From: Chara braunii
Lineage: Eukaryota; Plantae; Charophyceae
Length of the DNA: 64,000 nucleotides
Assembly (NCBI GenBank): GCA_003427395.1
Contig: BFEA01000004.1
Span: 2,709,322 to 2,773,321 of the forward strand
Direction of reading: 5' to 3'
Position numbers and translations under genes: made by a program. The notes below the pieces were generated by a model, which was not told the origin of the DNA, searched no databases, and saw only the letters and a program-made list of their open reading frames with translations. Numbering within the stretch: the first letter of the stretch is position 1; each line of letters starts with the position of its first letter. Positions 786 to 60,383 of this stretch are shown one piece after another.

Positions 786-1003
786 TTTTGAAGGAGTGAG
801 GTTGCCTGTCGCACGCTTGGGGCTGCCCGTGGCCCTTGCCCTAGACTGCTCGTGGCCGTTAGCCGGGTGTATCCCTGAGCTACTAAAGCCCCGGGCTTAC
901 ACAACCTCCCCACGATGTGGGCCTTATGTCCAAGTATGTGTGGTCTTCATGTCCAGGACACATCCACGGGGAGCGTGCCTGCTTGTGTCAAAAGTGAAGC
1001 GGA

Positions 1004-1094
1004 GTCCTTCGGGAAGGATACGGAGAAGATTAGCAAGGCCCCTGCGCAAGGATGACACGCATAAATCGAGAAATGGTCCAAAAAAAAAAAAAAA
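1004..1094 (+). pseudogene. U6: Retroposed U6 snRNA copy 1 (internal deletion, poly(A) tail, TSD)
   Basis: GATACGGAGAAGATTAGCAAGGCCCCTGCGCAAGGATGACACGCATAAATCGAGAAATGGTCC matches plant U6; A15 tail at 1080-1094; flanking direct repeat AGTGAAGCGGAG (993-1004) / AGTGAATCGGAG (1096-1107). Confidence 0.93.
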
Positions 1095-1127
1095 GAGTGA
1101 ATCGGAGAAACTGGACTCAACTACCCC

Positions 1128-1694: not shown

Positions 1695-2582
1695 ATGTCG
1701 CGCGTGTACGTGGGAAATTTAGACCAGCGAGTAACGGAAAGAGAGCTTGAAGACGAGTTTCGAAGTTTCGGTGTGCTGAGGAGTGTGTGGGTGGCTCGAA
1801 AACCCCCTGGATTTGCATTTATAGAGTTCGATGACCCGCGAGATGCGGATGATGCGATACGGGCGCTGGATAACAAAAACGGATGGAGAGTAGAGCTATC
1901 CAGGAGCTCGGGGGGGGGAGGGGGGGGGCCAAGAGGAAGGGGGGGTGATGACATGAGATGTTACGAGTGCGGGGAACCGGGGCATTTTGCGAGGGAGTGC
2001 AGGCTGCGGATCGGAGGAGATGGCAGAGGAGGAATAGGAGGGGGAGGAGGGGGTCGAGGCCGTAGTCGGAGTCCGAAATATCGACGTAGTCCGAGCTATG
2101 GAGGGGCTGGAAGAAGACGGCGGTCTCGAAGTCCCAGCTACGGTCGATACGGAGGTGGTCCGCCTCTTGGCGGCGGCGCCGCCGCCATGGGTGCCCCCCC
2201 TGCAGCTTTTGGTGGAGGGGTCGGATTTAGGGGTAGAAGTCCGATTTTCGAGAGACGAAAACCGAGTAGAAGTCCAAGCTTTGGGAGGAGGCGACACAGC
2301 AGAAGTGCCAGTCTCGTAAGGAGTCGAAGCAGGAGCCGCAGTCCTCCTATGCGAGTAGATGTTCCTCGAGAGGACTTCAATGGAAATGGCTTTGATAGGG
2401 ATCGCAGTCCTCCTCGACGCGGTCTGAGTCCAGTAAGGAGAAGGAGCCTCTCCCCTCCACCACCTCGTCGGAATCGCAGCTTCAGTCGTTCTCCGCCCAT
2501 ACGCAGAGATAGACGCGTGTCACCATTGCTGAACGGCAGTCCTGTCCGTGATCGTCGTCGCAGCCGTAGTCGCAGTCCCTGA
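1695..2582 (+). CDS. RSZ: RSZ-subfamily serine/arginine-rich splicing factor (RRM + CCHC zinc knuckle + RS domain), RSZ21/RSZ22-like; CDS uninterrupted
   Basis: MSRVYVGNLD (RNP2), ARKPPGFAFIEFDDPRDADDA (RNP1), KNGWRVELS, zinc knuckle CYECGEPGHFARECR and a long RS/SP tail; 295 aa ATG to TGA. Confidence 0.96.
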   Translation: MSRVYVGNLDQRVTERELEDEFRSFGVLRSVWVARKPPGFAFIEFDDPRDADDAIRALDNKNGWRVELSRSSGGGGGGPRGRGGDDMRCYECGEPGHFARECRLRIGGDGRGGIGGGGGGRGRSRSPKYRRSPSYGGAGRRRRSRSPSYGRYGGGPPLGGGAAAMGAPPAAFGGGVGFRGRSPIFERRKPSRSPSFGRRRHSRSASLVRSRSRSRSPPMRVDVPREDFNGNGFDRDRSPPRRGLSPVRRRSLSPPPPRRNRSFSRSPPIRRDRRVSPLLNGSPVRDRRRSRSRSP

Positions 2583-20689: not shown

Positions 20690-21360
20690 ACCATAAAACC
20701 GAAAGGCTGTGACACATGATTTTGTTGGCTTTTGTAATAAATAAATTAATTAAATAAAGCAAATTCATTTTTGTTGTGTGCGTTTCGCTTGGAGCGAGAC
20801 CGTTTCATTGCTGCCTTCGCCGATCCTTGGTTTTGAGAATCTCTTATTTTATTTTTGTCAATTTACTAATTTTGAGAATTGCGACAACATCAGAGAACAT
20901 AATCATCAAACAATGTCCAAGCAAGGAATCATGACTGACTAACTCAAGTCAAAAGGTAAGATGAATAAGGGAAAAAACTCATAATAATCTCAGAAAGTAC
21001 AAATGAAAGGGCATGACCAACACTCGTTAGGAGTCCTCACTCATCCCTCAAGGTCACATACTCAACCTCTGATTTGGCTGTGCGTTTCCTGTGTCTTTAA
21101 CCATGTTTGTGTACTTCTTGAGATTGTGGCCTTTGAATATAGACCCACTTGCTTACAAGCTCTGAATCCTTTTACCCGAGGCCCATGATACGGAAGTCAA
21201 CCATAGCACAAAACTCCTTCCATAAAGTACGAAGATATGGCTGGGAGAAAATCCCACGCCCGAGATGTCGGAACTTGGATGGCTCATTCACTGCCTCGTA
21301 GTAATCTTCGCTGAAGAAATATACCTCTTAGCTAAATTAACCAGACTGCTCCAACAAGAT
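20690..21360 (-). repeat. Dispersed ~700-bp repeat with decayed ORF, copy A
   Basis: Minus strand translates EPSKFRHLGRGIFSQPYLRTLWKEFCAMVDFRIMGLG; the downstream tail also aligns with copies B and C. Confidence 0.8.
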
Positions 21361-31000: not shown

Positions 31001-32952
31001 CATAACTATCCTTTTTTTTTTTTTTTTCAGACGCCCAAAAACAAAAAATGAAGGGTCATACAAAGTGTGGGTGCAAATGAGGTGAAGGGAAAGAAAGAAC
31101 TTGAGTCCTCCACGGACCTTAAGTAGATGAAGTCTCAAACAATCTTTATAACTCTCTTTTTTGTGACCCAAAAAAATATCACCACCCTCCTCTAGCTATG
31201 ACTGCCAAACTCACCGTCTATGGCCGCCGAGTCCACACCAACGACCATCGGTTATCACTAACTTGTGTTGCAACCCCTATTGCAACAACAAACTTTCATC
31301 ACCAAGTCGCACGACAATCCACACCTCCTTGCAGCTATGGCCGCCGATGCCGCAAGTATCCGGCCAACAAGCTTATGGCTATGGCTGCTGCCGTCCAGCT
31401 ATGGTCGTGGAGTGCCTGACTACGGTCGAGGAGTGTCCATCTTTCACCACCTCTCTTACTCCCACTTACTTGCTCATCACTCACACCTCCACAATAGCCA
31501 CCTTCTTCACCACCTTCACACACCTCACAGAACATCAAAAATTTCGGCAACACTTCCCCCGTTCCACCTTGCATTCCACTATGGAGTTGGGCATCACCTT
31601 CCCCTCACGCCACCATGCAGACCACCTTCCATTCCAGCAACATCTCTCTCGCACCTGCAAATCACCATCTCCCTCTAGCAGCACATCCCTCTCACTTGCA
31701 TACCACCATCTCCCTCTCCTTCATTTCCAGACCACCATAGCATCCCTCATCACCTTCTTCTTCTTAGACGCCAGCAACCTCTCCCCTCAGCAGATGAATG
31801 ATTTTCTTCCTAGCAAATGAGCAGCATCACTGCCTCACAAGTTTGAGCCAACTTGGGAAGTAGGTTGCTTATATAGTTGAGGGAGGTGGTGGTGGCAGCC
31901 TGAGCCCTCAACCAAAAATTGGAACTCAGGCTGAGCCCTTGGCATGTACCAGGTCTACAAAGCTCAAAACACCAGATCCATCCATTAGGAAAAGGACTTG
32001 GCTTCTTTTCAGGCATTAGTGCACCCAGGGGTGGCTCTATCCAGCCCCTTCCTTGTTGATCTGTTATTGTTGAGGCCTAGCCTCAGCAATGCATTTCCCC
32101 CCTAGACCTAACCAGACTCAGAGCCAACTCCCTGGCCAGTTTGCTGCACAAAGTGCAGAAAACCTCCTGAGAACCTGGCCACGGCAGTGGCCAGGTACAC
32201 ACACACACACACAAGGGGAAAAAAAATAAAAATATAACTCCACCTTTTTTTTTTTTAACGAGTGTGAAAGCTTGTTGAAAGGAGCAGCCCCTCCCACGTT
32301 CCGTCATTACCCAGAGTCGAGCTAGAGTCAATCTCAACAGGGCCTTCTACCCCTTAGTGCGCCCGAACCTGGCTCGGTCCATGTGCCAAGTTCGGGCACC
32401 ACCTCAGGTTGCTGCAGCCCGTTCAAAACGAACGGGCGCAGGTACGAAAGTATGCAACGTAGAAGGGGCCAAAAAATATGGTGGTGTATATTTTCATGTC
32501 CTAGCGGTAGATTCATTCGATTTTGCTCATCGTACCAATGAGAGTAGACTGAGGCCAGTGGCAAGGTGGAGCAGCCCGTTCGTCAAAACGAACGGGTGTT
32601 CACTCACTTCGTGAAAACGAGGGGCACCAAAAGAAGAGAAAAAATAAAAAAAGAAAAGGAAAAAAATATAAACGAAACCTAAAAAAGGAAGAATCTAAAG
32701 AGACTTAAGGAAAAAGCAAAGAGAAAAAAAAAGAAAAAACACACTTACTTGCTATCCCGTGAAAACGGCCAACCACTTATCTTTTCAGGGCAGGTGCCCT
32801 GTCACTTCAACATCCGTCGTCTGTCCGTTTAAGTTTAGTAGTGTTTTTTTTTTTTTTTTTTTCCCTCAGCTATTGCTCATTGGCTTATGCCAACGGTCGC
32901 CTTCCATAGTCTGCAGAGATGCAAATCTGAGTTCGAGTCCTTATGGATTCGA

Positions 32953-33001
32953 ACAAGTTTGGATCTCTCCTCGATTTATGCGTGTCATCCAGGCGTAGGC
33001 C
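32953..33001 (-). pseudogene. U6: Degenerate 3-prime fragment of U6 snRNA (copy 3)
   Basis: Minus strand GGCCTACGCCTGGATGACACGCATAAATCGAGGAGAGATCCAAACTTGT; 21-nt exact U6 core (32970-32990) with degenerate U6-like flanks; no clear TSD. Confidence 0.7.
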
Positions 33002-34184
33002 TATACAGGTCCGCGTGCGAATCTCAGTCGCGACCTTGGACGATCGCACGATCGAGATTGGCTGCACCTGTGAACCTCTGCACGTCTGCAGCTGCTCCAA
33101 AATGGAGCTAGCCCAGAGGCGTGACATGTTGGCTTCGATCCCGGTGTCTGCCAGGGAAGAGTTCAGTGTTATAACCTACTGGGCTAGCTCCTATCACAAT
33201 AGTGATAGGAGCAACTCTTCTATAAGAAGAGCTTGCCCAGTCGCTAGGCTGCTCTCTTGTAGCCTAGCACACTCTAAGGCTAAGGCCTGCTGGCACAACC
33301 AATCCCCCCCTTTCTCTTTGTTGGGCATTGACCCCCTGACTAGGTGCCCTGCCTTTACCATCCTCCTGCCGGTCCAAGCTCCGCCTCGCCGAAATACAAA
33401 GGTCGTCCATGGCTACAAGGGGGCCGCATTTTCACGCGCGGAGGTCTTAATTAGCCTTTTAGGCTTTGAATCACGTGGTTTAGCAGTCGTGCGTCCTTAT
33501 TTTAGGTAAGATAGGTCTATAATTATTATATATATATTTTTTACGACCGTACATGCGTGCGGCCTTACCAAATATGGGGAGAGACTGGCCACGCTGCCGG
33601 TCCTTGTCACCACTTCCAGATGCAGCGACGACAGGTCTTAGGTTCAAAACGTTTTAGTCTCTCGGTCATAGGGCGGGTCTGAATAAACTTCCAGCAGATA
33701 ACCAATCTCATCAAGACATGAGCTCGGATTACCTTTTACTAAGTCGGACATAATCTGAGGCTTAAAAACACCAGGCAGATACCCTTGTCAGGGTTTCTGC
33801 CCCGACATTGTGAAGCAGAAGTGGGCTACCACGAGTGATACTAACACACAACCATTGAAGAGGTTAAGGAATCCGTAGACAAGATGTAGGGGTCCGTGTG
33901 GCAGCAAGAGCTCTCCCATCTATTTGTGCAATGATTCTCCGCGTGCGGTACGAAGAGTTGAGGCAACATTTGATCCGTATACTGCACGGTACCAATTCAA
34001 ACTTGGGGTCCATGTGCTGATGGAGTAGGCTGTCATAGTGCACAAGCTCAACGATACCCTCATGGATTGTAGGTTTTTGTAGTAAATCGTCGGATTCTGA
34101 GCCAACCATCAACTTCTTGGTTGTCGGGTGTGGTGGGGCATTCGATGATGTCTCTTCAGGCACACTCATTATGTGTGCACGGGT

Positions 34185-36179: not shown

Positions 36180-36626
36180 TGTCCGTGGGCGTCAGCATGC
36201 CTTGCCGAGGTGCTTGTGCCACCTCATCAGGTAAGACTCTCTGGCTACTGGGGCCTGTAGAAAATTGTATGAGCCTGGCGTCCGAAGTTCGCGTACGGCA
36301 AGGTACTGCCCAACCTTGGTGCTTATCATTGCTATTCGGTCCAAGTTGCCCTCGATACTGGTAGGGTGATGGTCCTGAGTGTTGGCCACACTAAGGTACA
36401 ATAGAAGGGATAGCCCCCTACACTAAGGTAGGATAGTAGGGATGCCCTGTATCCCTACTATCCTACCTCAGTGTGACCAACACTCAGGACCATCACCCTA
36501 CCTGTATCGAGGGCAGCTTGGACTGAACCTTGCCATAACGGGAACGTCTACAGGACCCCGTAGTAAGAGTCTTACCCGAAAAGCTGGGACAAGCACCTAG
36601 GCAAGGCATGTTGGCGCCTACGGACA
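36180..36626. repeat. Long imperfect fold-back (inverted repeat)
   Basis: TGTCCGTGGGCGTCAGCATGCCTTGCC ... GGCAAGGCATGTTGGCGCCTACGGACA; centre GGTAGGATAGTAGGGAT/ATCCCTACTATCCTACC; a diverged arm copy lies at 36870-37065. Confidence 0.85.
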
Positions 36627-37115: not shown

Positions 37116-37995
37116 GCCTCGTTCCCTTGGGACAACCATGGCCGACCGCTCCAGGCGATCAATGTGTCTCTAGTAACTGGCCACTACAACACCCTGGGCT
37201 TGATTGACGTGAGGATGGGTTGGGAGGTGGCCCCACCCTGTCAAGATGACCTTTGCCTGCCCGCTGCCAGCAATCACCGTGGGTCTGGTCATTGGCCTGC
37301 ACAACACCCTGGGATTTACACATAAAAAACAAAAGGACCACCAGCTTCCCGTGACAATTATCCACCGTCCCCCCATTTTTTCGGTGATTTGAATGACTTA
37401 GTTGGATGATGGATGTCTGTCCAAACTTATTTTCGCAGGGGATGACGGGGTGCCGTTGGGGGGCTGCACTGATGGTGAATGGTGAAACCAGGCCTTAAGG
37501 AAAATTTGAAAACCCACCTTCCATTACCCCTCCTATCCCCCCATTTTTTGGCCTCCGCCCTTGGGATAACCATGGCTGACCGCTCCAGGCGGTCAATGTG
37601 TCCCTAGTAACTGGCCTCTACAACACCCTGGGTTTGATTGACGTGAGGATGGGTTGGGAGGTGGCCCCTCCCTGTCAAGATGACCTTTGCCTGCCCGCTG
37701 CCAGCAATCACCGTGGGTCGGGTCATTGGCCTACACAACACCCTGGGATTTACTCATTAAAAAAAAAAACCACCAGCTTCTCGTGACAATTATCCACCGT
37801 CCCCCCGTTTTTCCGGTCATTTGAATAACTTGGTTGGATGATGGATGTCCGTCCAAACTTATTTTCTCAGGGAATGACGGGGTGTTGTTGGGGGTTTGCA
37901 CTGATGGTAAATGGTGCAACTAGACCTTAATGGAAATTTGAAAACCCACCTTCCATTACCCCTCCTATCCCCCCATTTTTTGGCCTCCGCCCTTG
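37116..37995. repeat. ~434-bp tandem duplication, with a partial third unit at ~38040-38140
   Basis: CCCTTGGGA.AACCATGGC.GACCGCTCCAGGCG occurs at 37124 and 37558, with continuous alignment after each. Confidence 0.9.
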
Positions 37996-43129: not shown

Positions 43130-43895
43130 CTACTGGGGCAATTTGGTTGACTTGGTCAAAAGGTATGTCTCACCATCAGAGATTGACTATGAAGTTGTGA
43201 CTGAACCATCCAAGTTTCGATATCTTCGACGAAGAATTTTCTCCATGTCATATCCTGCTTCTCTGTTGGAGAAGTTTTGTGCTATGCTTGACTTTCAAAT
43301 CTTTGGCTTTGGATAAACCTATTTGGAACTCATGGACTTTAGGTGACTCTACATCTCTAGGTCATAATCTCAAGAAGTACATAGACGTTGCTCAAGGCAA
43401 AAGAGACGCACAATCAAATGAGAGATTGAAGATGAGAACCGAGAGGGAGAGGGAGGACTCTTGACGCTGACTATGTTTTTTCATCTCTACTTCTTGAGAT
43501 TATTAGGATTTCTCATCTTTCGTCATTCATCTAGTCTTTGTCTTGAGTCACGTCCGTCTTGATCTTGTTTCATTGACATTGTATGATGCTGTGCTCTGTG
43601 CTGATCTTGTAATAGTTCTCAAAATTCATAAAATTTGGCAATCATAATGTGCTGTATATTTTGTTTTAATTTATTATTTGCCTAATCACACTTGTTGTTC
43701 CGAATCACAATTAAAGATTCCCAAGGTTTGGGACCGGTGTAGACCACAATTGAAGGGTCTCGCTCGAAGTCGAACGCATGCAACAGGAATGGATTTGCAT
43801 TAGTTAGTCAATTATTTAGTACAAAAATTGAACAAAATCTTGCGTGACCACCTGTTGCCTTTCTGATTACCGGGATTGGTCTGATTGGAAAAGTG
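43130..43895 (+). repeat. Dispersed ~700-bp repeat with decayed ORF, copy B
   Basis: Aligns along its length with 49420-50110 and with the reverse complement of 20690-21360; peptide EPSKFRYLRRRIFS..FCAMLDFQIFGFG. Confidence 0.85.
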
Positions 43896-49419: not shown

Positions 49420-50110
49420 CATTATAGGGCAGTGGCAGAACCATCAAAGGTTTGACACCTTCGATGAGGGATCTTCTTCAAAACATATTTTTCTGCTTTG
49501 TGGGAGGAGTTTTGTGCTATGCTTGACTTCTGAATCTTTGGCCTTGGATGAACCAATTAAGAACTCGAGGGTTTTATGTGGCTCTATATTACTATACCAC
49601 AATCTTAGGAAATACATAGACGTGGCTCAAGGCACAAGAGATGTACAATCAAATGAGAGACTGAGGACGAGACCTGAAAGAGAGAGTGAGGACTTTTGAC
49701 GAGTGTTGACCATGTTTATTCACTTGTACCATTTTAGATTATTATGAGTTCTCATTTTCCTTTATCCATCTTATCTTTGCCTTGAGTCAGTTAGTCTTGA
49801 TTCACTTTCATTGACATCTGTTTGATGTTATGCTCTTTGTTGATTTTGCCACAATTCTCAACTCCTTAAAATTTAACAATCATGATGTACTTTAAATTTT
49901 ATTTTAATCCGAATCACAATTAAAGATTCCTAAGACCTAGGATCGGCATAGACCACAATTGAAGTGTCTCGCTCGAGGATGGACGCATGCAACAAGAAGG
50001 GATATTGCATTAATTAATTATATATTCATTGCAAAAATTCCTTAAAATCCAGCGTGACAGCTTATTGTCTTTTCCGATCGCCAATAGTGGTCTGATTGGA
50101 AAAAATGTGA
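49420..50110 (+). repeat. Dispersed ~700-bp repeat with decayed ORF, copy C
   Basis: Shares blocks such as TTTTGTGCTATGCTTGACTT and CCGAATCACAATTAAAGATTCC with copy B. Confidence 0.85.
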
Positions 50111-51579: not shown

Positions 51580-52118
51580 AAAGCTAAAAAAAAAAAAAAA
51601 AAAAAAGGGGTTGTAGACCTCGAAAAAATCTACAACACCATATTTTTTATTTTATNNNNNNNNNNNNNNNNNNNNNNNNNNNNNNNNNNNNNNNNNNNNN
51701 NNNNNNNNNNNNNNNNNNNNNNNNNNNNNNNNNNNNNNNNNNNNNNNNNNNNNNNACCTAGTTTTTTTTTTTTTTTTAACCTTTTTTTTTTTTTTCTTGC
51801 CTTGTTTTTTTTTTGGTCAAGGTCTGTGTGTGCCAAGTTTGGTGTTTGTTGGGGTCTTGGAGTCAACTGTTTTGGCTAGCCTTGAAAAATCCAGAAAATT
51901 TAAAAAACTGAAAATAGTGAATTTGCATGAAAACACACTTTTGCCTTGCTGTTTTATAGTTTTTTTAAGTTTTTTTTTAATTCTTGTTTTTTTGTAAGTA
52001 GTTAGTATGATCTTCACTCTATGAATTGGTGGCATGTTTGGTTAAAATGACCCTTGGGGTTTGTTATAAATGGTCCGAGAAGTGGTTTGAAAATTGAGGC
52101 CTTTGTTAACCGTCTCTC
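51185..52118. mobile_element. Non-autonomous DNA transposon-like repeat spanning the assembly gap
   Basis: Right part homologous to 27830-28015; AT-rich core shares the GTTGTAGACCTCGAAAAAATCTACAAC block with 15243-15270; left boundary uncertain. Confidence 0.5.
51656..51755. other. Assembly gap (100 N)
   Basis: Run of N. Confidence 1.
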
Positions 52119-53049: not shown

Positions 53050-53830
53050 ATCGTATATTCCCATAGTGCCATGGGGCGGGGGCCCTCCCATTCGCACTCG
53101 GCTGGATTGAAGGGGAGAGCGCTGATAGGGGTAGCAGATTCATAGACCCAGTGGTCCTTATTTTGGGCCTCCAAGCACCCTGACGCTGAGAAGCTAGCTT
53201 ATGGGGACATCTCGATCGCTCTCCTCTTGTCTGAGAAGGGTTGTGTGCCTGGGTCCCGGCAGCGCTGGTGCATAGGCCTGGAGCGTTGCATTAGTGAGGG
53301 ATAGGTTTTGGGCCTGGTACCCCAATATTAGTGTCGGGAGGTCCTGAAAGCTCACCACCCAGTCCCCTGGGGTGAGAAGCCGTCCTTTTCTAAGCGCGAG
53401 CCTCCTTGCTAGCAGGATTGTATCAATGATCACGTCTCTTTTGGACTCCAAGTCTTTGATGCCCAGCTGGGCCTTGAGCTCCGACAACGACTTCCAATCC
53501 CCCGTCTCTGGGTTCCACAGATCGCCAACCATGTAGCAGCCGCTTCGGACCCATGGGAGCCATGGGGAGTGTGTGGTGAGGTGGAGGATTTTCCCTGTAG
53601 GATCTCTGATTTGTGGGTTTCCGAAGAGAGGTTGCCTCAAGACCTCACGCCATCTGTGAGGGGTGGATTTGCAAATTATCCCTAGAAAATCGCATCTTTG
53701 TGAAAAAAAAGGGGAAAACTAGGGCGCAGTCAGTCACGGTTTCGCGAATTTTGCTCCAAGCTAGGGAAATCGTGAATGTGTCCAACCCATCCTTAGGGTT
53801 GGGTGGGGATGTGTTGTATTCGCCGTACTA
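53050..53830 (-). mobile_element. LINE (L1/Tx1-like) ORF2 C-terminal remnant
   Basis: EVLRQPLFGNPQIRDPTG...WVRSGCYMVGDLWNPETGDWKSLSEL resembles the post-RT region of L1/Tx1-type ORF2; disrupted, no RT core visible. Confidence 0.6.
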
Positions 53831-53897
53831 TTGGGAGGATGTCTGAAGTGGATTCAGAACTGAAAACGTGACTGCGTCTCAAAAGCTCTTGACGGCT

Positions 53898-53980
53898 GCC
53901 CTTCGGAACGATACACCGAAGATTAGCATGGCCCCTGCGCAAGGGTGACACACACAAATCGAGAAGTGGTCCAAATTCTT
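53898..53980 (+). pseudogene. U6: Retroposed U6 snRNA copy 2 (same internal deletion, degenerate TSD)
   Basis: GCCCTTCGG|AACGATACACCGAAGATTAGCATGGCCCCTGCGCAAGGGTGACACACACAAATCGAGAAGTGGTCCAAATTCTT; flanks CAAAAGCTCTTGACGGCT (53880-53897) / CAAAAGCTTTGTCGGGCT (53989-54006). Confidence 0.9.
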
Positions 53981-54676
53981 GGGGCCAACAAAAGCTTTGT
54001 CGGGCTACCGGTACTCCGTTGCTGCATGCAAACATGCGGTATTCATATTGGTGCATTATTGTTATGGCAGGCAGCAAGCATCGCTGTGACGATGACCTCG
54101 GCACGAGAGAGGGCCTCGCCACACCACTCTCGAAATGTGAAAAAGACAAATATGTGGCGGGTGCATCTGGCCACGTCGTAGCGTGAAGTTCATTCTCATT
54201 TTGCACGTTTTGAGAGTGGTGTGGCGATGGCCAGAGTCACGGATTGGTAGTCGGTCCATGTGGCTGCATGGTGGAGAGGGGTAATAACTTTCAAGTAACA
54301 CATCAAGTGGTCGAATCCTGTACAAATCCAACCCAGATGAATGTAAGCATGGTAAGGGCTCACCCTCTCAGTAAAAGGAAAAGGAAAAGAAGCCACCCAC
54401 GCATTGGGTGGCTTTCGAAAAAGGGCGAAGAGTACATGGCCACCCATTGGGTGGGGTCCGAAAAAGGACGATGCTTACATGGATTGGTGTTGTCGGTAGT
54501 GTAGTGGGCGGGCTGTTCAGTTTCCTTTCCGCCGGAAACGTCTGGTGCATTAGGCCACGAAGATCTGTGGACCCGATAAAAGTCCTAGCGGATGGATCGC
54601 TGATACTTTTGGCGCCTTCTTGTGTCCTTTTGTTGTTATTTTTTATTCTGAAACCATTTTAGAGGGATATGTCTTT

Positions 54677-56000: not shown

Positions 56001-59000
56001 ATGGCCGTGGTCGTGACTGTTCATGGCGGCGGCGGCGCCACGTCCGCCTCCATGAACGTCCCCGTCGGCTCACCCTCCACCAGCCTGCTCCGAGTAGGCC
56101 CGCAGCTACGCCTTCCAGCATTTGCTATGGTGGACCTGGCAGGCACGTCCTGCTCTTCTTCTCAGGCTTGGATAGGTAGGGGCTTCTGTCGCCGGCCCTC
56201 CTCCATTGGATCCTCGTCTTCTTCCTCTTCCTCTTCTACCTCTTCTTCTTCTTCTTCTTCTTCTTCTTCTTCTTCTTCTCCTTCTTCTTTTTCTTCTTCT
56301 GCTTCTTCGTTTATCCATTCATCGTCCTATTCCCCTCCTCCGCTTATTCATCGTCATCATCACCACCAACATCAGAATCATTTTCATCACAGTGCTGGTC
56401 GGAATAGCGTTTCCTCCTCGCAGCAAATCAAGTCTGCTATCGATGCGAGGGCAACGGCGGCAGCGCCAGAACACGTGGCAATTGCGTCCATCGTGGACCT
56501 GGGAGAATGCCACGCGGCAGATGATCTGCGGGTATCGGGCGGGAGCGATGTTGAAAGCGCTCGCGGTGGCGGAAATGCAGCCCGCGGAACGAGCGCAGCG
56601 ACTGGGACGGCGAAGCCGCACGTCGTGGTCACACGGCCACTGGAGCTGAATTTCGTCGCCAGAGTGGACAGCGGAAACGCAGCAGCTGTAGAAGGAGGTA
56701 AAACGAGGGATCGGGGCGGAAGTGCGAGTGGGAGGCAGATGGAAAATACGAAGAGGAAGATAGTTTCTTGTCGTGGGAAAGGCAATGGATCCACTGGTAT
56801 TGCGAGGCCGACAAGCGGAGGTGGAGGACCGGCGAGTGCCAGAGAAAATCCTGGCTTTGCTCCCGTCGACGCCTTACCTTCTTCGCCTCCATCTCCATCG
56901 CGCCTGTCCCGTGCGCGCCATTCTGCGACCGCTTCGGGCAATCATGAATTCGACAGTGACTGGCCGGTCGACCGGTTGGTTAACCCGGTCCCAGCAGCAC
57001 GGTTGTCGTCGTGTAGTGTTGTCCCTCTGCTTGGTCTGGAGATGAAGACGGAAGCTCAGGAGCCAGCTATGGCAGCGCCAAGGGTAGAAGCTCCAGCCTC
57101 TGCACCTTTTTCTACCGATCCCGGGGAGGAGCAAACGGGAGAAGCAGAGGAATCCCGGGGTCGCACTATCGGGATGGATACGACCGCGTCTGTGTCGGTC
57201 ATTGCCAATGGCAGCGTCGGAGGCTACTTGTCGAGGGGGACATCATCATCATCATCAACTTCAACGTCGACGTCGTCGATGGAGGAGAACGAAGAAGGTG
57301 GAAGTAACAATGAGAGAAGGAAAGGTGGAGGTCGGCGATGGACTGGCCCGAAGCGAATGAAGAAAAGGGAGCCTTTGCCACCGTGGTCGCCGGAGTACTG
57401 CCGAAGGAAGGAGGAGGAGATGTTGAAGTCGATTCTGGATATGAGTGCCGGTGGTGACGATGAAAATGGAGATGGAGGTGATTATGTGCGAAGACGGAAA
57501 CGTCACGTTGACAGCGTGCTGAACGCTTGGCTCGGCAAAATCACGCGTGTGGAGTTGATCAATGTCGCCAGGGAGCTTGGTCGATTACGTTGCGCTGATT
57601 ACTCTCTGGATATCTTCTCCTGGATGACGGCTCAGAAAGGACGTTTAAAACCAAACGCGCACGCGTATGTGTCCATGATCTCGCTCCTCGGTCGCTCGGC
57701 GATGGTGGAAAAGGCACAGCAATTGTTCGACGAGATGGAGGACAAGGGTGTCGAGAGGACAACGCACGCGTATAACGCTATGATCGGTGCGCTGATCGAA
57801 GGGGGGAGAGAGAAGGACGCATGGGCGCTGTTCCTAAGGATGCGCAGAGAAGCGAAGCAAGCGCAAGGCGACAGCAGGGGGGCAGGTATTCGCGCTGCTG
57901 TTGCCGATATGAATGCGGAATGCGATGCCGCAAACGAATCGGTTGCGTCCTACCTTAGCGCTAAAGCGGAGGGGAATGCTGGTAAGAGTGTCGGTACTGA
58001 TGTCGAGAGCAGCAGCAGTGATGAGCTTAACCGAGTGGAACCCGATGCCAAGCGGAGGGGATACAAATGCGCTCCTGACTGTGTCACGTATAACTCCATT
58101 CTGAAGTATTGTGCCAACATCAGGAGTCGTAGCGAAAGACGGGACCTTAAAAGTGCGGGTGGATCGACTCGAATCGGAAGCGGGAAGGGTCATTATAGTA
58201 AAGCGCGCGATGAGGACAGGGCTTATGGTGCGCTGTGGGCAATTGATCTTCTGCAGGGCATGATTGAGGACGGCGTGGAACCGAACCTCATCACATACAA
58301 CACCGTCATCAGCGCCTGCAGACATCATGGCCTTTATCAGAAAGCGATGGAGATCTTCCGCAAAATGGAGGAGAAGGGAATTCGCGCAGACGTGATCACT
58401 TACAATTGCCTGATTGATGTGTGCGCCAAGGCCAAGCTGTGTGACAAAGCGAGCGACTTGTTCAAGTCGATGAAATCGGCGGGAGTAGGGCCGAACCTGA
58501 TGACCTACACGGGGCTGATTGGCGCGTACGGAAGCGCGGGAAGGCCTGAGGACGCACAGCGTGTCTTCGATGAACTCGTACGGGTTGCTTCGTCTCCTTC
58601 TGCCTCTCCTCCTCCTCCTCCTCCTCCTCCTCCTCCTCCTCTCGCTGTTGGAGATATGGTGGAGTCTTCTCGTACTACTCCTCCCCTTCCGTCTCCTAGC
58701 GGTCGGGGCATGGCGGAATCTCGCGCTACGGTAGTTAAGCCTCCTGACGTTTTTACATGGACGATGATGGTGGATGCCTACGGGCGAGCGGGAATGGCAG
58801 AGAAAGCGGCGCACATGTTTGAAGAGATGCGCGCCAGTGGCATCCGGCCGAGCCTGCTGACATGGACCGCGTTGATGAGGGCACACGGACTCGTTGGGGA
58901 TTGTGATGAGGCTACGCGCGTGTTCAACGAGATGCAGCGGGCGGGAGAAACCGTTGACATCACCGGAATCAACGTTTTGCTTGACGTGTACGGTAAGAAC

Positions 59001-60383
59001 GGCCGCTGGAGGCAGGCTGCTGTGGTGTACAACGCCGTCTGGAGCAGGTCGCATGCCATGCGGACTGACAGCAGCTTTTCTAACGGGGACCTAAATCATC
59101 CAAACGGAACTTTGAGACGGACGGCTTCAGGTGCAACGTCTATTGCGGAGACCGGACACTTGTCTTCATCATCGGCTTTATCGACGTCGTCAGCGACGTG
59201 CGGAAGCACATCGGTGGTGCTCACGATGGGAATGAATCCGCCGCCGTCAGATTGCCGTGTGGAATCTGTGGATGGTGCTGCGGCATTGCCAATGGGAGAT
59301 GTAGTACGAAGGCAGGCGACCAGAAGAGCTGGAGAAGCGATGGCGATCGACAGAGAAGACGAGGTGACGACCAATGGCAATCACGAACGTCGTGGCCATG
59401 GACAAGTGTCTCAAGTAGTCTCTGTTCTCCCATCGCCAGTCTCGTCCGCCGACGACAGGGAACGTCCTTCTTCTTCTTCTTCTTCTTCCTCTCTCTCTTC
59501 CTCATCTCGTTCCACGTCACGCGATGGATCCCCGTCGGAGAGCCCGTTATCTCCTTGCCGCGGAAGTAGGCTGGTGGCCGGTGATGAATCTGAGGAAACG
59601 TGTTCTGCCAGACCGATCGCTCAGCCGCCGGCCTCCGAGCAATGCGGACCTGGCAGGAACGACGGTTTTCCCTCAGAGCAGGATGCCATGATTGCCGACC
59701 ATAGCCGCGGCCACGGCAGTCCTGTTGCAGCAGCTGCAGCTGCACGCAGCAGCAGCAGCAGTAGCAGTCTTTATAGCAGCTACTCGTCGGGACACTTGGC
59801 AGCAGATGAGGTGAAGCAGTCGGCTATGGCGGCTGAGGCATCAGCAACAGCGGCAGCAGTGCCCGAAGGAAAAGAAGAAGAAGAAGACGAAGAAGAAGAT
59901 AGGGATGTTAAAGATGCGTCCATAATGCATAGACGTCCGCAGTCTTCGGAACAGCAGCGGATTGGTAGCGAAGAGCACAGCTTGTGTTCCTCCAGGTTGA
60001 TCTCCCAGGTATCGCCAACCTCCTCGTCGTCTCTCACCACGTTGTCCTCCTCTGCTGCCACGGAATCACGCTGTCCGTCCGGGAATTCATTCGCACCAGA
60101 GGCTGGCGTTGCTAGACCCGCACTTTCCTCATGGAAAGTCAAGCCGCTGTTTGGTCGAGTGGCTGCGCGTCCGAATGTCGCAACTTTCAACACGATGATC
60201 AATACTTTTCATCGAGCCGGAAGATTAGAGGAAGCCCTGCACGTAGAGAAACAGATGGCGGTTTGTGGTTGCCAGCCCGACCATATCACATTGGCGTTGC
60301 TGGCGCGGACGCTAGATGACATGGGATTGCATCGCCGAGCAGATGAACTGAGGAAGAGTGTGAAGAAGGGCAGAAGGAGATGA
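56001..60383 (+). CDS. P-class pentatricopeptide repeat protein, probably organelle-targeted (N-terminal PPR region resembles EMB2654/pTAC2-type proteins; no SMR or DYW domain seen)
   Basis: ORF open from 55887, first in-frame ATG at 56001. Repeated PPR motifs (PNAHAYVSMISLLGR, PNLITYNTVISAC, ADVITYNCLIDVCAK, PNLMTYTGLIGAYG, PDVFTWTMMVDAYGRAG, PNVATFNTMINTFHRAG); Ser-rich N-terminus. Start codon uncertain. Confidence 0.92.
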   Translation: MAVVVTVHGGGGATSASMNVPVGSPSTSLLRVGPQLRLPAFAMVDLAGTSCSSSQAWIGRGFCRRPSSIGSSSSSSSSSTSSSSSSSSSSSSSPSSFSSSASSFIHSSSYSPPPLIHRHHHHQHQNHFHHSAGRNSVSSSQQIKSAIDARATAAAPEHVAIASIVDLGECHAADDLRVSGGSDVESARGGGNAARGTSAATGTAKPHVVVTRPLELNFVARVDSGNAAAVEGGKTRDRGGSASGRQMENTKRKIVSCRGKGNGSTGIARPTSGGGGPASARENPGFAPVDALPSSPPSPSRLSRARHSATASGNHEFDSDWPVDRLVNPVPAARLSSCSVVPLLGLEMKTEAQEPAMAAPRVEAPASAPFSTDPGEEQTGEAEESRGRTIGMDTTASVSVIANGSVGGYLSRGTSSSSSTSTSTSSMEENEEGGSNNERRKGGGRRWTGPKRMKKREPLPPWSPEYCRRKEEEMLKSILDMSAGGDDENGDGGDYVRRRKRHVDSVLNAWLGKITRVELINVARELGRLRCADYSLDIFSWMTAQKGRLKPNAHAYVSMISLLGRSAMVEKAQQLFDEMEDKGVERTTHAYNAMIGALIEGGREKDAWALFLRMRREAKQAQGDSRGAGIRAAVADMNAECDAANESVASYLSAKAEGNAGKSVGTDVESSSSDELNRVEPDAKRRGYKCAPDCVTYNSILKYCANIRSRSERRDLKSAGGSTRIGSGKGHYSKARDEDRAYGALWAIDLLQGMIEDGVEPNLITYNTVISACRHHGLYQKAMEIFRKMEEKGIRADVITYNCLIDVCAKAKLCDKASDLFKSMKSAGVGPNLMTYTGLIGAYGSAGRPEDAQRVFDELVRVASSPSASPPPPPPPPPPPLAVGDMVESSRTTPPLPSPSGRGMAESRATVVKPPDVFTWTMMVDAYGRAGMAEKAAHMFEEMRASGIRPSLLTWTALMRAHGLVGDCDEATRVFNEMQRAGETVDITGINVLLDVYGKNGRWRQAAVVYNAVWSRSHAMRTDSSFSNGDLNHPNGTLRRTASGATSIAETGHLSSSSALSTSSATCGSTSVVLTMGMNPPPSDCRVESVDGAAALPMGDVVRRQATRRAGEAMAIDREDEVTTNGNHERRGHGQVSQVVSVLPSPVSSADDRERPSSSSSSSSLSSSSRSTSRDGSPSESPLSPCRGSRLVAGDESEETCSARPIAQPPASEQCGPGRNDGFPSEQDAMIADHSRGHGSPVAAAAAARSSSSSSSLYSSYSSGHLAADEVKQSAMAAEASATAAAVPEGKEEEEDEEEDRDVKDASIMHRRPQSSEQQRIGSEEHSLCSSRLISQVSPTSSSSLTTLSSSAATESRCPSGNSFAPEAGVARPALSSWKVKPLFGRVAARPNVATFNTMINTFHRAGRLEEALHVEKQMAVCGCQPDHITLALLARTLDDMGLHRRADELRKSVKKGRRR

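Follow-up and report, generated by a model that had tools for sequence, protein, structure and literature searches.

Two U6 snRNA Retrocopies With a Common Internal Deletion in the Genome of the Streptophyte Alga Chara braunii

Introduction

A 64,000-nt stretch of the Chara braunii genome (assembly GCA_003427395.1, contig BFEA01000004.1, positions 2,709,322 to 2,773,321 of the forward strand; hereafter the window) contains two retrocopies of U6 snRNA that lack nearly the same internal segment close to their 5′ ends. How two insertions came to have such a deletion in common is the question addressed here. The way in which LINE enzymes acquire and copy cellular RNAs has classically been read from U6 retropseudogenes. 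To our knowledge, these pseudogenes have been studied almost only in mammals, and our literature search found no report on U6 retrocopies in Chara or other streptophytes.

The initial annotation of the window, made from the sequence alone, proposed two origins for the deletion, namely, a shortened U6 amplifying as a SINE or a reverse transcriptase (RT) that jumped repeatedly across the U6 5′ stem-loop. In this work, we found that the deleted pair is a real, modestly unusual variant of ordinary LINE-made U6 pseudogenes. Both copies are debris under either origin, and their value lies in the genome-wide pattern. If an RT hop recurs, its frequency and register ratio would record the behavior of a plant-lineage LINE enzyme on structured templates, and the gap would also be a footprint of the structure of the U6 5′ domain. 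If the copies trace to a source-gene lineage, they would add to the evidence that defective U6 variants feed the amplification of U6 in Chara.

Materials and Methods

The sample comprised 322,685 bp of Chara DNA: the window, its flanks (L001 and L002, which add 14.7 kb of new DNA), and 244 kb from ten other scaffolds (L003-L012) reached via ten LINE ORF2 relatives. U6 copies were counted by nhmmer with a full-length copy as the query and then with a profile of all copies. U6 positions are numbered according to the majority consensus of the ten copies. That one window holds both deleted copies means little, as this window was chosen for them from approximately 1000 annotated windows of the Chara genome.

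Results and Discussion

Structure of the Two Insertions

The Rfam U6 covariance model (RF00026), a check proposed in the initial annotation, was run on the window and placed both copies above its gathering score of 44 (Table 1). The match of copy 1 spans 980-1087 and that of copy 2 spans 53901-53980. The model start at 980 is an artefact in which flank sequence was forced into the 5′ stem; the true start of copy 1 is 1004 because the target-site duplication ends there. As first described, each copy passes from the U6 5′ end, located directly after a target-site duplication, into AA(C/G)GATAC. In copy 1, positions 1004-1021 read GTCCTTCGGG joined to AAGGATAC, with the junction inside CGGGAA (1010-1015). 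In copy 2, positions 53898-53914 read GCCCTTCGG joined to AACGATAC, with the junction inside TTCGGAAC (53902-53909).

Table 1. Coordinates of U6-derived and LINE-derived features in the window.
Feature	Position	Strand	Evidence
5′ target-site duplication of copy 1, AAAAGTGAAGCGGA, possibly including G1004	990..1003	+	Local alignment with 1091-1107
U6 retrocopy 1, 5′-complete, 17 nt missing	1004..1079	+	Rfam U6, 63.3 bits; alignment to full-length Chara copies
A15 tail of copy 1	1080..1094	+	Sequence
3′ target-site duplication of copy 1, AAAAGAGTGAATCGGAG, overlapping the end of the A-run	1091..1107	+	Local alignment
~90 nt of non-U6 sequence and A19, directly 3′ of the third U6 piece	32844..32952	-	Sequence
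Third U6 piece, 5′-truncated, model positions 60-105 only	about 32953-33003	-	blastn, Rfam, nhmmer
Decayed L1-type LINE ORF2 fragment, post-RT region (between RT and zf-RVT)	53197..53718	-	Exhaustive HMMER
5′ target-site duplication of copy 2, CAAAAGCTCTTGACGGCT	53880..53897	+	Local alignment with 53989-54006
U6 retrocopy 2, 5′-complete, 18 nt missing	53898..53980	+	Rfam U6, 65.1 bits; alignments
8-9 unrelated nt, GGGGCCAA[C], between the U6 3′ end and the 3′ duplication of copy 2	53981..53988	+	Unique in the window
3′ target-site duplication of copy 2, CAAAAGCTTTGTCGGGCT	53989..54006	+	Local alignment

Aligned to full-length Chara copies, copy 1 has three private substitutions and copy 2 has about seven, and the ACAGAGA box reads ACGGAGA and ACACCGA, respectively. 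The 3′ ends are also unlike. Copy 1 ends in GGTCC followed by the A15 tail that had been noted initially, of which the first three A may be derived from U6, and has no U-tract. Copy 2 retains the U-rich end TTCTT, followed by 8-9 unrelated nt, and has no poly(A) other than the AAAA of its duplication.

Both insertions carry the marks of target-primed reverse transcription (TPRT). Duplications abut both ends of each copy, the target is A-rich (TTTT/A) as judged from the AAAAG duplications in both, and copy 1 has a poly(A) tail. The initial annotation had stated that the duplications of the two copies differ yet both begin with AAAAG, and we found the same, with TC preceding them in each case. 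These duplications are imperfect: each pair has 15/16 matches with one gap, a score equaled by approximately 2% of random site pairs in the window (1.8% for copy 1 and 1.9% for copy 2).

Plant-type U6 genes have an upstream USE near -70 and a TATA near -30. We found neither in place upstream of copy 1 or copy 2 in the window sequence, and there is no TATA within 40 nt upstream of either. Near copy 1, a single USE-like sequence was found, in the wrong orientation; the whole window has seven such matches against 3.7 expected, which is at chance level. A functional U6 has an intact 5′ stem-loop and the ACAGAGA/AGC core; both copies have lost the 3′ strand of the 5′ stem. Copies 1 and 2 are separate LINE-style insertions and not genes, and both are non-functional debris, i.e., dead processed pseudogenes of U6.

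A sequence comparison of the 600-nt flanks of the two copies revealed nothing in common, and therefore the copies are not a segmental duplication, an objection that the initial annotation had raised against its own reading. A gene-conversion pair was likewise ruled out by the unrelated flanks and the differing duplications, and the six differences within the 5′ 25 nt argue against any recent conversion. In the alignment, no substitution is common to the two copies and only the deletion is shared. Given three versus about seven private changes, they differ in age. The view that these are two independent LINE-type retrocopies, each with its own duplications, thus holds.

The Missing 5′ Segment

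Relative to full-length Chara U6, copy 1 lacks 17 nt at a GGA microhomology, whereas 18 nt bounded by GG on either side are missing from copy 2. The gap in copy 1 can be written as positions 11-27, or as anything from 9-25 up to 12-28, because GGA is present at both 9-11 and 26-28. The canonical text of the missing segment in Chara is ACATCCGTTAAAATTGG, and the junction strings of the deleted form are CCTTCGGGAACGATAC and CCTTCGGAACGATAC. The initial annotation was right that this segment is absent and overstated its length, at 18-19 nt, because it measured the gap on angiosperm U6, in which the stem is one base pair longer; the full-length copies of the same genome give 17 and 18 nt.

In the fold of a full-length Chara copy, a single unpaired base separates a 5′ stem-loop (GUCC-UUCG-GGAC, positions 1-12) from a small hairpin at 14-28. 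This second hairpin is weak, with a z of about -1.6 for the 45-nt fold, which is not significant. According to the predicted structure, the gap would take out the 14-28 hairpin and, from the first stem, 2-3 nt of its 3′ strand. The deleted copies retain the UUCG loop of the 5′ stem-loop and its 5′ strand. The GGA/GGA pair is one among 35 direct repeats of at least 3 nt in U6. Regarding the jump proposed initially, an RT jump is plausible and is our slight favorite, but it was not a jump over the 5′ stem-loop, because the 5′ strand and loop of that structure remain and only its 3′ strand is lost. If the fold is correct, a better description would be a skip from the 3′ foot of the second hairpin to the G-run across the helix junction.

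Census of U6 Copies in the Sampled DNA

Our nhmmer census returned 12 hits that represent 10 U6 insertions in the 322,685 bp, or about one per 32 kb. The window has three, L004 and L012 have two each, and L005, L007, and L009 have one each. The high copy number expected from the initial annotation is borne out by this density. No U6 was found in the 14.7 kb of flanking DNA (L001/L002), and a permissive Rfam scan detected no further U6 in the window. Apparent U6 5′ ends at L006:2217 and L002:24092 were rejected as chance matches, as was an occurrence of AAAATTGGAAC at window position 31915.

The 5′ end is kept in 9/10 insertions. Outside the window, all seven 5′-complete copies, from the ten other scaffolds, have the canonical 5′ region and start with GTCCTTCGGGACATCC..AAAATTGGAAC; the region as a whole reads GTCCTTCGGGACATCC(G)TTAAAATTGGAAC, apart from scattered substitutions. 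The copy at L004:9016-9116 is an end-to-end match to Rfam U6 at 94 bits. These seven copies, including the full-length match, rule out a natively short Chara U6, the other objection that the initial annotation had foreseen. Duplications were recognized by eye in 6/7 of the outside copies; most start with A runs, and most of the copies have poly(A) tails. A third deleted copy is absent from the 322,685 bp, where the junction strings, with up to two substitutions allowed, have no match apart from copies 1 and 2. Deleted copies form a minority of Chara U6 copies; with 0/7 outside the window, their share is below roughly 35% at 95% confidence. The deletion junction joined to an intact ACAGAGAAG had no exact match in metagenome contigs, a result that is uninformative because the 3′ half of plant-type U6 is also absent from the genome/viral contigs.

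Indels of one nucleotide are infrequent among the other copies, and the junction G-run is free of them. An insertion of ~4 nt in CTGCG^CAAGG is common to 3/7 outside copies (L004:2500-2594, L007:17655-17751, and L012:22424-22521). It points to a variant U6 source lineage that gave rise to a large share of the copies in this sample. The forms observed on the three scaffolds are CTGC-CCTTCA-CAAGG, CTGTG-CATT-CAAGG, and CTGC-TCTTT-CAAG, all in the internal stem-loop region.

Several of these copies are rearranged in other ways. At the site directly after ACAGAGA in the catalytic core, three different rearrangements were seen: four extra nt in L005:17903-18046 (minus strand; GAGA) and in L012:22424-22521 (ATGA), and an 8-nt loss of ACAGAGAA in L004:2500-2594. 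In the L005 copy, ~32 nt (positions ~13-44) are also duplicated internally, with six differences between the two versions; this copy has an A17 tail and duplications of the AAAACGGAC type. At L004:2500-2638, a U6 retrocopy runs directly, through a CC overlap, into another partial U6 that starts at position ~54 and reaches the 3′ end, and the whole is bounded by one duplication pair, GAACCTC[A/C]GGCTGGAT. This arrangement resembles the product of template switching, in which the RT left one U6 RNA and resumed at the 3′ end of a different one. The L012:22424-22521 insertion consists of U6, then unrelated sequence, then poly(A).

The third U6 piece in the window, reported initially at 32953-33001, is real and extends to about 33003. 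With copies 1 and 2 as queries, blastn matched 21/21 positions at 32970-32990 on the minus strand; the Rfam U6 score is 15 bits (E 0.28 in a 301-nt search), and nhmmer gave an E of 5e-4. This piece is uninformative on the deletion because only U6 model positions 60-105 are covered. It has a chimeric layout (U6 3′ part, 90 nt, and A19) that copies 1 and 2 do not have. The ~90-nt tail is single-copy in 79 kb, and no target-site duplication was found around the chimera (32844-33003). An antisense tRNA-like T-arm, GGACTCGAAC, is present in the tail of this minus-strand feature (32844-33003).

Origin of the Deletion

The explanation that we slightly and tentatively favor is two hops of a LINE reverse transcriptase, in two registers, between the G-runs that lie where two adjacent hairpins have their feet; a single deleted source gene is a close rival. 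An L1-type LINE would have made each copy from normal Chara U6 snRNA by TPRT at TTTT/A-like sites. The RT would have copied U6 from its 3′ end up to GG(A) at 26-28, the 3′ foot of the predicted 14-28 hairpin. It would then have hopped to GGG(A) at 8-11 in the 3′ strand of the 5′ stem-loop, one nucleotide across the hairpin junction, and continued to the true U6 5′ end. A cDNA ending in TCC (from A28-G27-G26) could re-pair with G9-G10-A11, which would leave the 17-nt gap of copy 1; one base over, TCC could pair with G8-G9-G10 through a T:G wobble, which would leave the 18-nt gap of copy 2. With two registers, the one-G difference at the junction needs no further event. Under this scheme, the gap would date from the reverse transcription step rather than from a source gene, and the second hairpin would presumably exist in vivo.

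Several observations are consistent with such a hop. The insertions are independent products of TPRT, judging from their own AAAAG duplications, the A15 of copy 1, and the unrelated flanks, and the canonical Chara U6 from which they would have been copied has the full 5′ region in 7/7 other 5′-complete copies. The GGA/GGA repeats at 9 and 26 flank the gap, and the one-G difference, which the initial annotation had taken to slightly favor independent jumps, is what two pairing registers on GGG predict. The lack of any common substitution, the unlike 3′ ends, and the different ages of the copies fit as well, and in the predicted fold the donor and acceptor would sit at adjoining feet of hairpins 1-12 and 14-28. 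Insertions that resemble template switches are common in the same sample (L004:2500-2638, L005:17903-18046, the third piece in the window, and L012:22424-22521), and L1-type LINEs with APE, RT, and zf-RVT are annotated in the genome, with a fragment in the window. However, the same site in 2/2 copies demands a hotspot, and GGA/GGA is only one of the 35 direct repeats; the second hairpin is not significant, the acceptor sits within a stable UUCG hairpin, and none of the seven other copies has the gap. In the available portion of the survey of mammalian U6 pseudogenes, no class with such an internal deletion is described (PMC4476161). Moreover, indels in common mark some U6 lineages of Chara (the ~4-nt insertion in 3/7 copies), and therefore descent from one ancestor is a normal way to explain such an indel here. 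This leads to a second reading that is quite possible, in which the copies stem from a U6 source gene, or a small set of them, with an internal deletion, the 17-nt loss between the GGA repeats having arisen once in DNA. Such a gene would bear a promoter, and its defective transcript would be retroposed repeatedly by LINEs into copies that are themselves dead. Having no 5′ stem-loop, the transcript would probably be uncapped and prone to surveillance polyadenylation, which would make it a good LINE template; copy 1 is indeed trimmed at its 3′ end and polyadenylated, as an aberrant RNA would be. Shared ancestry is also the simplest account of the same site in both copies, the ~4-nt insertion in CTGCG^CAAGG of three outside copies provides a parallel lineage, and the differing ages suit a long-lived source. 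Against a source gene, the copies have no substitution in common besides the deletion, the one-G difference demands an extra indel exactly at the junction, for which a later homopolymer slip would have to be invoked, and neither a third member nor the source gene itself was seen in the 323 kb.

The remaining explanations are less probable. One is the self-propagating SINE of the initial annotation, in which a shortened U6 founded a U6-headed subfamily that is transcribed from its own copies, as one of several indel-defined lineages behind tens of thousands of U6 copies. We consider this unlikely. The U6 density is high (10 insertions in 323 kb), other U6 copies have subfamily-like shared indels, and the 7SL-derived SINEs that lack an internal part of 7SL RNA offer a precedent (PMC7245038). 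However, a SINE family would have many copies with shared diagnostic changes and a common 3′ tail. We found two members in 322,685 bp, a small sample, with no diagnostic substitution in common, 0/7 other copies of this form, and neither a common nor a LINE-derived tail (A15 in copy 1 versus TTCTT and 8-9 nt in copy 2). Plant-type U6 promoters are upstream USE/TATA elements, and neither copy has one in place; we know of no internal Pol III promoter for plant-type U6. Two independent deletions in DNA after insertion, by replication slippage at the microhomology, are still less probable. Private indels of at least 4 nt do occur in other copies, such as the ACAGAGAA loss in L004:2500-2594, but here the endpoints would have to coincide within 1 nt on 2-3 nt of homology among 35 or more repeats. 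That the functional Chara U6 is natively short, or that the two copies are one duplication/conversion pair, is scarcely credible: nothing except the two copies themselves speaks for it, and against it stand the 7/7 canonical copies, the unrelated flanks, the differing duplications, and the six differences in the 5′ 25 nt.

Comparison With Known Retrocopies and SINEs

SINEU are SINEs with U1/U2 heads, and retroviral reverse transcriptases are known to make direct-repeat and hairpin deletions. The Chara gap resembles the latter in its junction microhomology and in the removal of a predicted hairpin, at whose base the enzyme would pause. It differs from them in that the enzyme would be a LINE ORF2 protein acting on chromosomal DNA, with 2-3 nt of homology and a weak hairpin.

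Mammalian U6 processed pseudogenes made by L1 include U6/poly(A) and 3′-truncated classes (Doucet et al., 2015; PMC4476161). Like these, the Chara copies are 5′-complete, have duplications at a TTTT/A target, and lack a promoter, and copy 1, in which the poly(A) abuts a trimmed U6 3′ end, resembles the U6/poly(A) class. In contrast to these, the host is a streptophyte alga and the density in Chara is far higher; in addition, the Chara copies have a common 17/18-nt internal deletion near the 5′ end, whereas the available portion of the survey describes 3′ truncations and chimeras (PMC4476161).

Chimeric U6/LINE-1 retrocopies have been attributed to template switching or RtcB ligation (PMC4476161; PMC6789731), and a tripartite pseudogene of Magnaporthe is also a chimeric retrocopy (PMC2104539). 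The likeness to the proposed hop is that the RT leaves one template position and resumes elsewhere. In Chara, the third piece in the window and L012:22424 have the layout U6-other RNA-poly(A), and L004:2500-2638 has the layout U6-U6. For copies 1 and 2, the switch would differ in occurring within one U6 molecule over 17-18 nt, which yields a deletion and not a chimera. RtcB ligation is unsuitable for these two copies because ligation cannot explain an internal gap.

SINE heads are derived from tRNA, 5S, 7SL, and snRNA, and the 7SL-derived SINE1/Alu/B1 lack an internal 7SL part (PMC7245038). Like these small-RNA-headed SINEs and SINEU, the Chara pair is an internally shortened small-RNA sequence spread by LINE machinery, and the analogy drawn in the initial annotation appears reasonable. 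The known families differ in that their Pol III promoter is internal, their members are numerous and bear diagnostic changes, and their tails frequently match a LINE. The pair in Chara has no upstream USE/TATA promoter, no LINE-derived tail, no shared substitution, and no third copy in 323 kb, and the proposal of a shortened U6 amplifying as a SINE is not supported.

LINE Fragment and Other Features of the Window

The LINE ORF2 fragment lies 180 nt upstream of copy 2 in the opposite orientation and is not joined to it. Exhaustive HMMER found 58 relatives at E ≤ 0.001, with a best E of 6.6e-11. The longer relatives have RVT_1, Exo_endo_phos, and zf-RVT domains, and thus are L1-type LINE ORF2 proteins; many of them are Chara braunii GBG proteins. 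The C. braunii proteins include combinations of Exo_endo_phos with RVT_1 and of RVT_1 with zf-RVT, such that a suitable LINE is present in the genome. The fragment was missed by Pfam and by the word-index protein search (ORF 53194-53640, minus strand). A spurious ORF through the U6 antisense shared words with one candidate in the word-index search, and none scored.

Two intronless genes are present in the window. The gene at 1695-2582 (+), annotated in the assembly 600 bp downstream of copy 1 on the same strand, encodes a 295-aa SR-protein-like product with an RRM, a CCHC zinc knuckle, and an RS-rich tail, and may be a retrogene. The gene at 56001-60383 encodes a PPR protein; a PPR-domain search gave 114 hits, none from Chara. 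The N runs (assembly gaps) at window positions about 51650-51750 and at L006:2100-2200 lie beside very long T/A homopolymers, where the sequence is unreliable.

Other repeats were found in the window. A near-perfect hairpin at 36335-36527, with 78-nt arms that are 90% complementary and 37 nt apart, overlaps weak, below-threshold hits to a miRNA family (mir-5928); it probably represents an inverted repeat of the MITE-like kind. At 37124-37995, two units that are 91-94% identical form a tandem repeat whose period is about 432 bp. A dispersed repeat of roughly 330 bp occurs at 20976-21302 (inverted), 43186-43466, and 49428-49750.
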